From: Auanema rhodensis
Lineage: Eukaryota > Animalia > Nematoda
Assembly: GCA_964057225.1 (NCBI GenBank)
Contig: OZ059900.1
Span: 13,516,001 to 13,580,000, forward strand
Direction: 5' to 3'
Length of the DNA stretch: 64,000 nt
Part shown: one piece after another, positions 21 through 62,376 of the stretch
Numbering within the stretch: position 1 is the stretch's first letter
Layout: the number at the start of each line of letters is the position of its first letter
The notes under the pieces: generated by a model
What the model was told of the DNA's origin: nothing
The model's input: only the letters and a program-made list of their open reading frames with translations
The model's database searches: none
Made by a program: the position numbers and the translations under genes

Positions 21-50
21 AGCTTTGTATAGCTTTGTATAGCTTTGTAC
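21..50 (+). repeat. 10-bp minisatellite (AGCTTTGTAY) x3 in long units, x2 in short units
   Basis: agctttgtat agctttgtat agctttgtac at 21-50. There are only two copies in, for example, the units starting at 3202, 4356 and 6965. Confidence 0.97.
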
Positions 51-72
51 ACTGATCACATATACGGCGATA
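51..72 (+). promoter_or_regulatory. Candidate proximal sequence element (snRNA-type Pol II promoter), about -57 to -36
   Basis: Positional inference only. ACTGATCACATATACGGCGATA lies where nematode snRNA/SL upstream elements are expected, and its distance to +1 is constant in long and short units. Confidence 0.4.
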
Positions 73-107
73 GGCTAGAACAGTTCATAAGTTTCCTGAA
101 TAGATTT

Positions 108-129
108 GGTTTAATTACCCAAGTTAGAG
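108..129 (+). other. 22-nt spliced-leader mini-exon, SL1 variant with U19A
   Basis: GGTTTAATTACCCAAGTTAGAG versus canonical nematode SL1 GGTTTAATTACCCAAGTTTGAG: one mismatch at leader nt 19 (position 126). It ends in AG and is followed directly by GT. Confidence 0.95.
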
Positions 130-135
130 GTAGTA
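130..135 (+). promoter_or_regulatory. Trans-splice donor site (GAG/GTAGTA)
   Basis: GT directly follows the 22-nt leader and is paired in stem I with TTACC, as in SL1 RNAs. Confidence 0.9.
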
Positions 136-172
136 TCTCAATCTAACCAGAGAACTTCTGAGTTGGAAATAC

Positions 173-179
173 ATTTTGG
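173..179 (+). promoter_or_regulatory. Sm-protein binding site AUUUUGG of the SL RNA
   Basis: Single-stranded AU4GG between stem-loops II and III. It matches the nematode SL Sm site AAUUUUGG except for a preceding C. Confidence 0.88.
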
Positions 180-258
180 AAAGCACACCACGAGTGTGCA
201 ATATTGAAAACTGTCTGTCTTCGTATGATTATATGACACTATAGATGCCAAAGCAAAA

Positions 259-39300: not shown

Positions 39301-42300
39301 TTTGGTTTAATTACCCAAGTTAGAGGTAGTATCTCAATCTAACCAGAGAACTTCTGAGTTGGAAATACATTTTGGAAAGCACACCACGAGTGTGCAATAT
39401 TGAAAACTGTCTGTCTTCGTATGATTATATGACACTATAGATGCCAAAGCAAAACAAATTTGAATATGAACATGACGCGTCTTTTACATTATAGTTTGAC
39501 CGGATAAAGCTTTGTATAGCTTTGTATAGCTTTGTACACTGATCACATATACGGCGATAGGCTAGAACAGTTCATAAGTTTCCTTAATAGATTTGGTTTA
39601 ATTACCCAAGTTAGAGGTAGTATCTCAATCTAACCAGAGAACTTCTGAGTTGGAAATACATTTTGGAAAGCACACCACGAGTGTGCAATATTGAAAACTG
39701 TCTGTCTTCGTATGATTATATGACACTATAGATGCCAAAGCAAAACAAATTTGAATATGAACATGACGCGTCTTTTACATTATAGTTTGACCGGATAAAG
39801 CTTTGTATAGCTTTGTATAGCTTTGTACACTGATCACATATACGGCGATAGGCTAGAACAGTTCATAAGTTTCCTGAATAGATTTGGTTTAATTACCCAA
39901 GTTAGAGGTAGTATCTCAATCTAACCAGAGAACTTCTGAGTTGGAAATACATTTTGGAAAGCACACCACGAGTGTGCAATATTGAAAACTGTCTGTCTTC
40001 GTATGATTATATGACACTATAGATGCCAAAGCAAAACAAATTTGAATATGAACATGACGCGTCTTTTACATTATAGTTTGACCGGATAAAGCTTTGTATA
40101 GCTTTGTATAGCTTTGTACACTGATCACATATACGGCGATAGGCTAGAACAGTTCATAAGTTTCCTGAATAGATTTGGTTTAATTACCCAAGTTAGAGGT
40201 AGTATCTCAATCTAACCAGAGAACTTCTGAGTTGGAAATACATTTTGGAAAGCACACCACGAGTGTGCAATATTGAAAACTGTCTGTCTTCGTATGATTA
40301 TATGACACTATAGATGCCAAAGCAAAACAAATTTGAATATGAACATGACGCGTCTTTTACATTATAGTTTGACCGGATAAAGCTTTGTATAGCTTTGTAT
40401 AGCTTTGTACACTGATCACATATACAGCGATAGGCTAGAACAGTTCATAAGTTTCCTTAATAGATTTGGTTTAATTACCCAAGTTAGAGGTAGTATCTCA
40501 ATCTAACCAGAGAACTTCTGAGTTGGAAATACATTTTGGAAAGCACACCACGAGTGTGCAATTTTGAAAACTGTCTGTCTTAGTATGATTATATAACACT
40601 ACCGATGCTAAAGCAAAATGAATTTGAATATGAACATGACGCGTCTTTTACATTATAGTTTGATCGGATAAAGCTTTGTATAGCTTTGTATAGCTTTGTA
40701 CACTGATCACATATACGGCGATAGGCTAGAACAGTTCATAAGTTTCCTGAATAGATTTGGTTTAATTACCCAAGTTAGAGGTAGTATCTCAATCTAACCA
40801 GAGAACTTCTGAGTTGGAAATACATTTTGGAAAGCACACCACGAGTGTGCAATTTTGAAAACTGTCTGTCTTAGTATGATTATATAACACTACCGATGCT
40901 AAAGCAAAATGAATTTGAATATGAACATGACGCGTCTTTTACATTATAGTTTGATCGGATAAAGCTTTGTATAGCTTTGTATAGCTTTGTACACTGATCA
41001 CATATACGGCGATAGGCTAGAACAGTTCATAAGTTTCCTTAATAGATTTGGTTTAATTACCCAAGTTAGAGGTAGTATCTCAATCTAACCAGAGAACTTC
41101 TGAGTTGGAAATACATTTTGGAAAGCACACCACGAGTGTGCAATTTTGAAAACTGTCTGTCTTAGTATGATTATATAACACTACCGATGCTAAAGCAAAA
41201 TGAATTTGAATATGAACATGACGCGTCTTTTACATTATAGTTTGACCGGATAAAGCTTTGTATAGCTTTGTATAGCTTTGTACACTGATCACATATACGG
41301 CGATAGGCTAGAACAGTTCATAAGTTTCCTGAATAGATTTGGTTTAATTACCCAAGTTAGAGGTAGTATCTCAATCTAACCAGAGAACTTCTGAGTTGGA
41401 AATACATTTTGGAAAGCACACCACGAGTGTGCAATTTTGAAAACTGTCTGTCTTAGTATGATTATATAACACTACCGATGCTAAAGCAAAATGAATTTGA
41501 ATATGAACATGACGCGTCTTTTACATTATAGTTTGACCGGATAAAGCTTTGTATAGCTTTGTATAGCTTTGTACACTGATCACATATACGGCGATAGGCT
41601 AGAACAGTTCATAAGTTTCCTGAATAGATTTGGTTTAATTACCCAAGTTAGAGGTAGTATCTCAATCTAACCAGAGAACTTCTGAGTTGGAAATACATTT
41701 TGGAAAGCACACCACGAGTGTGCAATTTTGAAAACTGTCTGTCTTAGTATGATTATATAACACTACCGATGCTAAAGCAAAATGAATTTGAATATGAACA
41801 TGACGCGTCTTTTACATTATAGTTTGACCGGATAAAGCTTTGTATAGCTTTGTATAGCTTTGTACACTGATCACATATACGGCGATAGGCTAGAACAGTT
41901 CATAAGTTTCCTGAATAGATTTGGTTTAATTACCCAAGTTAGAGGTAGTATCTCAATCTAACCAGAGAACTTCTGAGTTGGAAATACATTTTGGAAAGCA
42001 CACCACGAGTGTGCAATTTTGAAAACTGTCTGTCTTAGTATGATTATATAACACTACCGATGCTAAAGCAAAATGAATTTGAATATGAACATGACGCGTC
42101 TTTTACATTATAGTTTGACCGGATAAAGCTTTGTATAGCTTTGTATAGCTTTGTACACTGATCACATATACGGCGATAGGCTAGAACAGTTCATAAGTTT
42201 CCTGAATAGATTTGGTTTAATTACCCAAGTTAGAGGTAGTATCTCAATCTAACCAGAGAACTTCTGAGTTGGAAATACATTTTGGAAAGCACACCACGAG

Positions 42301-45300
42301 TGTGCAATATTGAAAACTGTCTGTCTTAGTATGATTATATAACACTACAGATGCTAAAGCAAAATGAATTTGAATATGAACATGACGCGTCTTTTACATT
42401 ATAGTTTGACCGGATAAAGCTTTGTATAGCTTTGTACACTGATCACATATACGGCGAGAGGCTAGAACAGTTTATAAGTTTCCTGAATAGATTTGGTTTA
42501 ATTACCCAAGTTAGAGGTAGTATCTCAATCTAACCAGAGAACTTCTGAGTTGGAAATACATTTTGGAAAGCACACCACGAGTGTGCAATATTGAAAACTG
42601 TCTGTCTTAGTATGATTATATAACACTACAGATGCTAAAGCAAAATGAATTTGAATATGAACATGACGCGTCTTTTACATTATAGTTTGACCGGATAAAG
42701 CTTTGTATAGCTTTGTACACTGATCACATATACGGCGAGAGGCTAGAACAGTTTATAAGTTTCCTGAATAGATTTGGTTTAATTACCCAAGTTAGAGGTA
42801 GTATCTCAATCTAACCAGAGAACTTCTGAGTTGGAAATACATTTTGGAAAGCACACCATGAGTGTGCAATATTGAAAATTGTCTGTCTTAGTATGATTAT
42901 ATGACACTATAGATGCCAAAGCAAAACAAATTTGAATATGAACATGACGCGTCTTTTACATTATAGTTTGACCGGATAAAGCTTTGTATAGCTTTGTACA
43001 CTGATCACATATACGGCGATAGGCTAGAACAGTTCATAAGTTTCCTGAATAGATTTGGTTTAATTACCCAAGTTAGAGGTAGTATCTCAATCTAACCAGA
43101 GAACTTCTGAGTTGGAAATACATTTTTGAAAGCACACCACGAGTGTGCAATATTGAAAACTGTCTGTCTTAGTATGATTATATAACACTACCGATGCTAA
43201 AGCAAAATGAATTTGAATATGAACATGACGCGTCTTTTACATTATAGTTTGACCGGATAAAGCTTTGTATAGCTTTGTATAGCTTTGTACACTGATCACA
43301 TATACGGCGATAGGCTAGAACAGTTCATAAGTTTCCTGAATAGATTTGGTTTAATTACCCAAGTTAGAGGTAGTATCTCAATCTAACCAGAGAACTTCTG
43401 AGTTGGAAATACATTTTGGAAAGCACACCACGAGTGTGCAATATTGAAAACTGTCTGTCTTCGTATGATTATATGACACTATAGATGCCAAAGCAAAACA
43501 AATTTGAATATGAACATGACGCGTCTTTTACATTATAGTTTGACCGGATAAAGCTTTGTATAGCTTTGTATAGCTTTGTACACTGATCACATATACGGCG
43601 ATAGGCTAGAACAGTTCATAAGTTTCCTGAATAGATTTGGTTTAATTACCCAAGTTAGAGGTAGTATCTCAATCTAACCAGAGAACTTCTGAGTTGGAAA
43701 TACATTTTGGAAAGCACACCACGAGTGTGCAATATTGAAAACTGTCTGTCTTCGTATGATTATATGACACTATAGATGCCAAAGCAAAACAAATTTGAAT
43801 ATGAACATGACGCGTCTTTTACATTATAGTTTGACCGGATAAAGCTTTGTATAGCTTTGTATAGCTTTGTACACTGATCACATATACGGCGATAGGCTAG
43901 AACAGTTCATAAGTTTCCTTAATAGATTTGGTTTAATTACCCAAGTTAGAGGTAGTATCTCAATCTAACCAGAGAACTTCTGAGTTGGAAATACATTTTG
44001 GAAAGCACACCACGAGTGTGCAATTTTGAAAACTGTCTGTCTTAGTATGATTATATAACACTACCGATGCTAAAGCAAAATGAATTTGAATATGAACATG
44101 ACGCGTCTTTTACATTATAGTTTGATCGGATAAAGCTTTGTATAGCTTTGTATAGCTTTGTACACTGATCACATATACGGCGATAGGCTAGAACAGTTCA
44201 TAAGTTTCCTGAATAGATTTGGTTTAATTACCCAAGTTAGAGGTAGTATCTCAATCTAACCAGAGAACTTCTGAGTTGGAAATACATTTTGGAAAGCACA
44301 CCACGAGTGTGCAATATTGAAAACTGTCTGTCTTAGTATGATTATATAACACTATAGATGCCAAAGCAAAATGAATTTGAATATGAACATGACGCGTCTT
44401 TTACATTATAGTTTGACCGGATAAAGCTTTGTATAGCTTTGTATAGCTTTGTACACTGATCACATATACGGCGATAGGCTAGAACAGTTCATAAGTTTCC
44501 TGAATAGATTTGGTTTAATTACCCAAGTTAGAGGTAGTATCTCAATCTAACCAGAGAACTTCTGAGTTGGAAATACATTTTGGAAAGCACACCACGAGTG
44601 TGCAATATTGAAAACTGTCTGTCTTAGTATGATTATATAACACTACCGATGCTAAAGCAAAATGAATTTGAATATGAACATGACGCGTCTTTTACATTAT
44701 AGTTTGACCGGATAAAGCTTTGTATAGCTTTGTATAGCTTTGAACACTGATCACATATACGGCGATAGGCTAGAACAGTTCATAAGTTTCCTGAATAGAT
44801 TTGGTTTAATTACCCAAGTTAGAGGTAGTATCTCAATCTAACCAGAGAACTTCTGAGTTGGAAATACATTTTGGAAAGCACACCACGAGTGTGCAATATT
44901 GAAAACTGTCTGTCTTAGTATGATTATATAACACTACCGATGCTAAAGCAAAATGAATTTGAATATGAACATGACGCGTCTTTTACATTATAGTTTGACC
45001 GGATAAAGCTTTGTATAGCTTTGTATAGCTTTGTACACTGATCACATATACGGCGATAGGCTAGAACAGTTCATAAGTTTCCTGAATAGATTTGGTTTAA
45101 TTACCCAAGTTAGAGGTAGTATCTCAATCTAACCAGAGAACTTCTGAGTTGGAAATACATTTTGGAAAGCACACCACGAGTGTGCAATATTGAAAACTGT
45201 CTGTCTTAGTATGATTATATAACACTACCGATGCTAAAGCAAAATGAATTTGAATATGAACATGACGCGTCTTTTACATTATAGTTTGACCGGATAAAGC

Positions 45301-49980: not shown

Positions 49981-50073
49981 GGTTTAATTACTCAAGTTAG
50001 AGGTAGTATCTCAATCTAACCAGAGAACTTCTGAGTTGGAAATACATTTTGGAAATCACACCACGAGTGTGCA
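49981..50073 (+). ncRNA. Divergent SL1-like copy 174 (leader C12T, stem III G>T)
   Basis: Leader GGTTTAATTACTCAAGTTAGAG (49992); GCACAC>TCACAC at 50056. Confidence 0.75.
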
Positions 50074-53000: not shown

Positions 53001-55700
53001 GTTTGACCGGATAAAGCTTTGTATAGCTTTGTATAGCTTTGTACACTGATCACATATGCGGCGATAGGCTAGAACAGTTCATAAGTTTCCTGAATAGATT
53101 TGGTTTAATTACCCAAGTTAGAGGTAGTATCTCAATCTAACCAGAGAACTTCTGAGTTGGAAATACATTTTTGAAAGCACACCACGAGTGTGCAATATTG
53201 AAAACTGTCTGTCTTAGTATGATTATATAACACTATAGATGCCAAAGCAAAATGAATTTGAATATGAACATGACGCGTCTTTTACATTATAGTTTGACCG
53301 GATAAAGCTTTGTATAGCTTTGTATAGCTTTGTACACTGATCACATATACGGCGATAGGCTAGAACAGTTCATAAGTTTCCTGAATAGATTTGGTTTAAT
53401 TACCCAAGTTAGAGGTAGTATCTCAATCTAACCAGAGAACTTCTGAGTTGGAAATACATTTTGGAAAGCACACCACGAGTGTGCAATATTGAAAACTGTC
53501 TGTCTTAGTATGATTATATAACACTACCGATGCTAAAGCAAAATGAATTTGAATATGAACATGACGCGTCTTTTACATTATAGTTTGATCGGATAAAGCT
53601 TTGTATAGCTTTGTACACTGATCACATATACGGCGATAGGCTAGAACAGTTCATAAGTTTCCTGAATAGATTTGGTTTAATTACCTAAGTTAGAGGTAGT
53701 ATCTCAATCTAACCAGAGAACTTCTGAGTTGGAAATACATTTTGGAAAGCACACCACGAGTGTGCAATATTGAAAACTGTTTGTCTTAGTATGATTATAT
53801 GACACTATAGATGCCAAAGCAAAACAAATTTGAATATGAACATGACGCGTCTTTTACATTATAGTTTGATCGGATAAAGCTTTGTATAGCTTTGTACACT
53901 GATCACATATACGGCGATAGGCTAGAACAGTTCATAAGTTTCCTGAATAGATTTGGTTTAATTACCCAAGTTAGAGGTAGTATCTCAATCTAACCAGAGA
54001 ACTTCTGAGTTGGAAATACATTTTGGAAAGCACACCACGAGTGTGCAATATTGAAAACTGTTTGTCTTAGTATGATTATATGACACTATAGATGCCAAAG
54101 CAAAACAAATTTGAATATGAACATGACGCGTCTTTTACATTATAGTTTGACCGGATAAAGCTTTGTATAGCTTTGTATAGCTTTGTACACTGATCACATA
54201 TACGGCGATAGGCTAGAACAGTTCATAAGTTTCCTGAATAGATTTGGTTTAATTACCCAAGTTAGAGGTAGTATCTCAATCTAACCAGAGAACTTCTGAG
54301 TTGGAAATACATTTTTGAAAGCACACCACGAGTGTGCAATATTGAAAACTGTCTGTCTTAGTATGATTATATAACACTACTGATGCTAAAGCAAAATGAA
54401 TTTGAATATGAACATGACGCGTCTTTTACATTATAGTTTGACCGGATAAAGCTTTGTATAGCTTTGTATAGCTTTGTACACTGATCACATATACGGCGAT
54501 AGGCTAGAACAGTTCATAAGTTTCCTGAATAGATTTGGTTTAATTACCCAAGTTAGAGGTAGTATCTCAATCTAACCAGAGAACTTCTGAGTTGAAAATA
54601 CATTTTGGAAAGCACACCACGAGTGTGCAATATTGAAAACTGTCTGTCTTAGTATGATTATATAACACTACCGATGCTAAAGCAAAATGAATTTGAATAT
54701 GAACATGACGCGTCTTTTACATTATAGTTTGACCGGATAAAGCTTTGTATAGCTTTGTATAGCTTTGTACACTGATCACATATACGGCGATAGGCTAGAA
54801 CAGTTCATAAGTTTCCTTAATAGATTTGGTTTAATTACCCAAGTTAGAGGTAGTATCTCAATCTAACCAGAGAACTTCTGAGTTGGAAATACATTTTGGA
54901 AAGCACACCACGAGTGTGCAATTTTGAAAACTGTCTGTCTTAGTATGATTATATAACACTACCGATGCTAAAGCAAAATGAATTTGAATATGAACATGAC
55001 GCGTCTTTTACATTATAGTTTGATCGGATAAAGCTTTGTATAGCTTTGTATAGCTTTGTACACTGATCACATATACGGCGATAGGCTAGAACAGTTCATA
55101 AGTTTCCTGAATAGATTTGGTTTAATTACCCAAGTTAGAGGTAGTATCTCAATCTAACCAGAGAACTTCTGAGTTGGAAATACATTTTGGAAAGCACACC
55201 ACGAGTGTGCAATATTGAAAACTGTCTGTCTTAGTATGATTATATAACACTATAGATGCCAAAGCAAAATGAATTTGAATATGAACATGACGCGTCTTTT
55301 ACATTATAGTTTGACCGGATAAAGCTTTGTATAGCTTTGTATAGCTTTGTACACTGATCACATATACGGCGATAGGCTAGAACAGTTCATAAGTTTCCTG
55401 AATAGATTTGGTTTAATTACCCAAGTTAGAGGTAGTATCTCAATCTAACCAGAGAACTTCTGAGTTGGAAATACATTTTGGAAAGCACACCACGAGTGTG
55501 CAATATTGAAAACTGTCTGTCTTAGTATGATTATATAACACTACCGATGCTAAAGCAAAATGAATTTGAATATGAACATGACGCGTCTTTTACATTATAG
55601 TTTGACCGGATAAAGCTTTGTATAGCTTTGTATAGCTTTGTACACTGATCACATATACGGCGAGAGGCTAGAACAGTTTATAAGTTTCCTGAATAAACTT

Positions 55701-62283: not shown

Positions 62284-62376
62284 GGTTTAATTACCCAAGT
62301 GAGAGGTAGTATCTCAATCTAACCAGAGAACTTCTGAGTTGGAAATACATTTTGGAAAGCACACCACGAGTGTGCA
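62284..62376 (+). ncRNA. SL1-like RNA copy 217 with leader T18G
   Basis: Leader reads GGTTTAATTACCCAAGTGAGAG (G at 62301). Confidence 0.8.

Follow-up and report, generated by a model that had tools for sequence, protein, structure and literature searches.

The 22-nt SL1 leader is among the most conserved of nematode sequences and is found on the 5′ end of most nematode mRNAs. Caenorhabditis elegans carries ~110 SL1 genes in a 1-kb tandem repeat shared with 5S, Pristionchus pacificus has 187 dispersed SL1 loci with a dominant leader and a few minor variant loci, and in Oscheius tipulae SL1 and 5S are unlinked. Strongyloides ratti has 19 SL1-like leaders, and single-substitution SL1 variants, each seen once, are described in Ascaris, Brugia and Nippostrongylus; together with the P. 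pacificus loci, a first-pass annotation of the present DNA likewise states that variants of SL1 are known in some lineages. C. elegans reportedly tolerates many SL1 leader mutations in vivo, and in Ascaris leader-donor pairing is dispensable in vitro. With variants of SL1 so well known and these tolerances in view, a fixed one-base leader variant is plausible.

Auanema rhodense provides a second point of comparison. Its germline genome of 181 Mb loses 61% of its sequence from body cells, its tandem repeat families measure 167-504 bp, the eliminated DNA includes tandem arrays of 5S, tRNA and U2 genes, and large repeat blocks are retained on the two somatic X-derived chromosomes; read depth is given as ~236-fold for the retained and 29-fold for the eliminated DNA (bioRxiv 10.64898/2026.08.27.747507).

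Here we describe a window, by which we mean the whole 64,000-nt stretch of DNA analyzed, that consists of one unbroken head-to-tail array of 222 SL RNA gene units (1-64000, + strand) extending past both window ends. We consider it probable that this array is the lineage's own SL1 gene family, in which a U19A change has been fixed by concerted evolution, amplified to satellite scale and probably still donating its leader.

The tandem array and its genes

A two-mismatch search of the window returned 222 leader copies, all of them on the + strand, and the same search of dinucleotide shuffles (n=100) gave 0 leader matches. Successive leaders are spaced by 291 bp in 151 cases and by 281 bp in 70, and TRF assigns the whole of 1-64000 to one array (period 291, 97% matches). 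The two unit lengths differ because the 281-bp units hold two 10-bp spacer repeats rather than three. The density of 281-bp units rises toward the 3′ end of the window. Runs of unit variants recur along the array (e.g., ...HID..., ...QGB... and ...AEHID..., with one letter per unit variant), and multi-unit blocks have therefore been duplicated inside it. When the short ORFs of the window were looked up in public assemblies for related arrays, they were not on record.

By exact count, GGTTTAATTACCCAAGTTAGAG followed by GT accounts for 218 of the 222 leaders. One further leader carries T18G on the A19 background, and the other three are C-to-T variants (C12T once, at 49981; C13T twice, at 53674 and 57708). 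The canonical ending AAGTTTGAG (GTTTGAG) and its reverse complement occur 0 times on either strand of the 64-kb window. The census given in the first-pass annotation, with GTTAGAG fixed, a single GTGAGAG and the canonical form absent, is therefore accurate in every detail when all 222 copies are counted, and the interval from which it started, 108-129, is exactly the first leader. The features of the unit, with the evidence for each, are as follows.

21..50, + strand: three 10-bp direct repeats (AGCTTTGTAT/C) in the spacer (sequence, unit comparison)
57..75, + strand: CACATATACGGCGATAGGC, candidate promoter element upstream of the leader, at -51 to -33 relative to its start (position only)
108..129, + strand: first leader, GGTTTAATTACCCAAGTTAGAG, 22 nt, U19A relative to canonical SL1 (sequence and copy count)
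130..131, + strand: GT splice donor immediately 3′ of the leader, kept in 222/222 copies (all read ...GAG then GT)
108..202, + strand: SL RNA gene, matching RF00198 (Rfam SL1) over the whole model, positions 1-103 (36.7 bits, E 1.3e-4, gathering score 75)
173..179, + strand: Sm-binding site AUUUUGG (ACAUUUUGGAA), SL RNA nt 66-72, unpaired in the predicted fold (Rfam alignment, folding)
183..199, + strand: 3′ hairpin GCACAC-CACGA-GUGUGC, 6 bp, SL RNA nt 76-92 (Rfam alignment, folding)
62284..62305, + strand: lone ...AAGTGAGAG leader, GTGAGAG, T18G on the A19 background (exact count)

The units are SL1-type SL RNA genes in a compact, 5S-free repeat. The alignment to RF00198, obtained with E-value reporting, covers the leader, the GU donor, the Sm site and the 3′ hairpin (stem III), and fits stems I and II poorly; of the 10 pairs modelled in stem I, only 6 are standard pairs here. 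Leader identity to the Rfam consensus is 21/22, the sole difference being U19A. SL1 is the best family of its clan under clan competition and SL2 (RF00199) has no listed match, while 5S, tRNA and other Rfam families are absent from the unit, where they give chance-level matches only, at E up to 10. At Rfam gathering thresholds no family is called anywhere in the 64 kb. The gathering score of 75 for RF00198 is an operational cut-off and not a biological feature, and because 36.7 bits falls below it, standard Infernal/Rfam annotation sees the array as a plain, anonymous satellite. Upstream of the gene, the position of the 57..75 element suggests it as a candidate proximal sequence element for Pol II transcription of the SL RNA gene.

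Base 19 and the predicted fold of the RNA

The first-pass annotation had proposed that U19A removes an A14-U19 pair at the top of stem I. This does not hold for the Rfam SL1 consensus, which has no such pair and in which nt 13-21 form the loop of stem I. A different role for base 19 is predicted by folding of the native RNA, whose minimum-energy fold (-26.3 kcal/mol, z = -2.7) merges model stems I and II into one long hairpin and leaves the donor paired. Three segments of the unit enter into the comparison of folds.

119..131, + strand: 5′ arm of the predicted long hairpin, leader nt 12-22 plus donor GU (folding)
135..141, + strand: AUCUCAA, SL RNA nt 28-34, perfect complement of canonical UUGAGGU, nt 18-24 (in-silico folding)
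154..166, + strand: 3′ arm ACUUCUGAGUUGG, SL RNA nt 47-59, complementary to nt 12-24 (12/13 positions paired; duplex energy)

The long hairpin is kept in every suboptimal fold within 3 kcal/mol, and its A19-U52 pair has a probability of 0.89. The complementarity of nt 12-24 and 47-59 is greater than expected by chance, since, when the intron segment is shuffled, only 1/2000 sequences match the duplex energy of -15.9 kcal/mol and 11/2000 equal the fold energy of nt 1-62. Putting U back at position 19 in silico weakens the long hairpin from -17.5 to -13.3 kcal/mol, a loss of 4.2, and the most stable fold is then a canonical-like one of three hairpins, at -16.4 kcal/mol, with nt 18-24 paired perfectly to nt 28-34. 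With the native A19, the same canonical-like fold reaches only -12.2 kcal/mol as against -17.5 for the long hairpin, because A19 then faces A33, so that the U19-A33 pair is lost and A33 is left uncompensated. The intron carries complements to both leader versions, A19 and U19, and base 19 is predicted to decide between two mutually exclusive folds of the SL RNA (nt 1-62, window 108-169).

Within the mature 22-nt leader, the cap-proximal 3-bp stem (nt 1-3 with nt 10-12) is unchanged by U19A. This stem is needed for the translation of trimethylguanosine-capped mRNAs, according to PMC3203607 (citing Wallace 2010). U19A gives rise to no AUG. It abolishes the canonical UGA (nt 19-21) and introduces a UAG (nt 18-20; window 125-128), so that a different reading frame is open through the leader.

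Variation among copies, public reads and leader catalogues

Over the 103-nt RNA part, 172 of the 222 copies are identical. Variable columns number 13/98 in the RNA and 38/183 in the spacer (indel left out); all nine variant columns with at least 17 copies lie in the spacer, and no variant of the RNA part exceeds 8% frequency. Among RNA-part variants at functional sites, G71T, with 13 copies, and G72A, with 7, are the most frequent; both fall in the Sm site, which still reads A-U(n)-G-R. No compensatory double changes were found among the array variants, C12T and G59A sitting in separate copies. Singleton mutations have much the same density in the RNA part as in the spacer, and selection on individual copies is therefore not detectable. 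Taken as a whole, the variation is consistent with, without proving, a constraint on which variants spread (rough P ~0.02 to 0.08, by linked-site counting). A96T, just past the 3′ hairpin, occurs in a run of consecutive units at 40468-44803 and elsewhere, in 15 copies alone and in 2 more in combination.

Public reads were compared with one 291-letter unit, using three small runs from organism A, whose kind was guessed to be RNA, and one large run from organism B. Both organisms yielded whole-unit contigs that include the spacer, wrap across the repeat junction as circles and have a flat, low depth, which looks like what trace or contaminating DNA of a high-copy repeat gives. Because the whole unit and its spacer are present at flat depth, these contigs say nothing on transcription or trans-splicing. 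Their sequences are nevertheless informative on the units themselves. None of the run contigs has T at window position 126 (leader position 19), and the organism B contig, whose spacer has diverged by four listed changes and a 10-bp deletion, keeps the A19 leader, the donor and the Sm site unchanged. In the organism A runs the most common variant has T at window 191 (SL RNA nt 84, in the 3′ hairpin loop), a base found in just 5/222 copies here, and other arrays must therefore dominate the organism A libraries. A gap at 183-206 in run X5 was considered as a deletion and rejected, as it represents the two ends of one wrapped contig.

To look for trans-spliced mRNAs, metagenomes were scanned for leaders with a base other than G immediately 3′ of them; this returned 13 matches, none of them in an SL or mRNA-like context. 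Twelve of the 13 belong to one unrelated interspersed repeat (JGI metagenome contigs L001-L005 and L007-L013), which has AAGAAT or AAGATT upstream rather than GG; it matches nt 3-22 of the A19 leader exactly over 20 nt, continues with TACAAAATCGCG and lacks the SL RNA body. We read this as a chance match multiplied by the copy number of the repeat. The remaining match is an unrelated contig without SL context. A scan of viral contigs gave two identical phage-like chance matches only, and the bacterial and archaeal genomes scanned gave no leader match.

Exact-sequence and RNA-letter searches did not find the leader ...AAGTTAGAG in paper texts, and the supplements to the SL catalogues of SLIDR, of Guiliano and Blaxter and of Heterodera do not contain it. 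Three literature text matches to a 12-mer of the leader were set aside as unrelated primers or phage sequences. The first-pass annotation had allowed that the variant might already be catalogued as the normal SL1 of this clade; in the SL catalogues and supplements searched we did not find it, and by that measure the fixed A19 leader appears to be an unreported one-base variant, SL1 variants as such being well known.

A replaced SL1, a silent satellite or a second leader family

Two origins had been put forward for the array in the first-pass annotation, namely replacement of the main SL1 by concerted evolution or separate amplification of a distinct SL family. The fixation of the variant across intact-looking SL RNA genes, with 218/222 leaders identical, stands, and of the two origins we favor replacement. 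In this model, the window belongs to a very large tandem array of SL1-type genes, free of 5S, in which one substitution, U19A (...AAGUUAGAG), would have become fixed through unequal crossing-over and gene conversion. Each ~95-nt gene retains the parts that an SL RNA needs, these being the 22-nt leader, the GU donor, the Sm site (single-stranded in the predicted fold) and the 3′ hairpin, and the array would constitute the working SL1 family, or a portion of that family amplified recently, whose A19 leader would be donated to mRNAs by trans-splicing. We infer both that the A19 leader is transcribed and trans-spliced and that the rest of the genome lacks a canonical SL1 locus.

The array is probably a working SL1 family because every gene keeps its leader, donor, Sm site and 3′ hairpin. 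The near-identity of the leaders, the absence of a canonical copy and the full-length Rfam SL1 alignment point the same way, as do the identity of most RNA parts, the confinement of high-frequency variants to the spacer, the preservation of the Sm consensus by the variants that touch it, the cap-proximal stem that U19A leaves alone, the retention of the A19 leader, donor and Sm site in the organism B contig and the tolerance of leader mutations reported for C. elegans. Several observations argue against such a family. The runs labelled 'RNA?' look like contaminating DNA, given their circular whole-unit unitig and flat low depth; the Rfam score is half of the cut-off, with poor stems I and II; singletons are as dense in gene as in spacer; the copy number is satellite-like, lying far above the ~110 to 190 of C. 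elegans and P. pacificus; and, if the genome is that of A. rhodense, comparable arrays of tRNA, 5S and U2 genes lie in DNA that the soma discards.

Some of these observations lend weight to a reading that we regard as rather unlikely, in which one U19A copy was amplified to arrays of megabase scale, largely or entirely silent because they are heterochromatic or else restricted to the germline and discarded from the soma, and the working SL RNA comes from smaller loci elsewhere. A total of 222 copies in the window alone would be far above need, the even density of singletons across gene and spacer is what such arrays would show, and A33, the partner of canonical U19, has been left without compensation. 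T191, which predominates among unit variants in the public runs, is scarce in the window; this too favors silent arrays, as does the presence of 5S, tRNA and U2 tandem arrays in the eliminated DNA of A. rhodense (bioRxiv 10.64898/2026.08.27.747507). Against amplification of a silent copy stand the donor, intact in every copy, and the Sm site, which is kept or changed within its consensus only. It is very unlikely, in our estimation, that the A19 arrays instead form a separate SL family that exists beside canonical SL1 genes and tags distinct mRNAs, for example those of the germline or early embryo, especially if the arrays exist only before DNA elimination. Specialized or multiple SL1-like leaders do occur in other nematodes, and a base that picks between exclusive folds in silico could alter snRNP assembly or usage; however, one leader base is a small difference and the functional cap-proximal stem is untouched. 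We would likewise be surprised if the A19 arrays proved to lie in DNA confined to the germline and early embryo, giving a stage-specific leader or a differently folded leader RNA there while the soma uses a different and much smaller SL1 set. Were this germline-only arrangement true, genome elimination would reprogram both the supply and the identity of SL RNA.

The A. rhodense preprint makes no mention of SL1 or spliced leaders (bioRxiv 10.64898/2026.08.27.747507), a silence that fits the sub-threshold Rfam score of the array, as the ncRNAs of that study were annotated with Infernal. The four FISH probes of the preprint have no match in the window, even at 6 mismatches (bioRxiv 10.64898/2026.08.27.747507). 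If the genome is that of A. rhodense, the fate of the array in the soma, kept or discarded, bears on the role of the large repeat blocks of this species.

A working family with U19A in every gene copy, which we prefer to the readings above, would show in a clade V species that position 19 can change freely in nature. Fixed U19A would also provide a natural test of the leader as a promoter element, as a structural partner of the donor or as a translation element. There are practical consequences as well: standard pipelines will label A19 arrays as satellite, given a score below the Rfam cut-off, and where a pipeline considers only the canonical form, its counts of trans-splicing may be too low for this species. 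The interest of the array grows if such arrays are confined to the germline or if base 19 truly switches the fold of the RNA.

The closest parallels in scale are the 5S, tRNA and U2 arrays of A. rhodense, which resemble the SL array in placing small-RNA genes head-to-tail at satellite scale in a setting of programmed DNA elimination; those arrays lie in eliminated DNA, whereas the SL1 array is not mentioned in the preprint and the probes do not match it. At the level of the RNA, the array departs from the RF00198 SL1 model through its predicted long-range stem (nt 12-24 with nt 47-59) in place of stems I and II. Lineage-specific departures from the canonical 22-mer are shared with the S. ratti SL1-like family, Aphelenchus avenae, Meloidogyne SL1M and the Globodera and Heterodera SLs; those systems comprise many different leaders, mostly in clade IV, that have been demonstrated on mRNAs, whereas here we describe a single one-base variant fixed across the genes. 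The uncoupling of SL1 genes from 5S is shared with P. pacificus and O. tipulae, both of clade V. In P. pacificus the loci are dispersed and the dominant leader is one reported earlier, in contrast to the homogeneous mega-array described here, whose dominant leader was not found catalogued. With the SL1/5S repeat of C. elegans the array has in common the GU donor, the Sm site AUUUUGG, the 3′ hairpin, the tandem layout and an RNA of ~95-100 nt, and it differs in carrying U19A in every copy, in being without 5S, in its unit of 281/291 bp and in its far more numerous copies.
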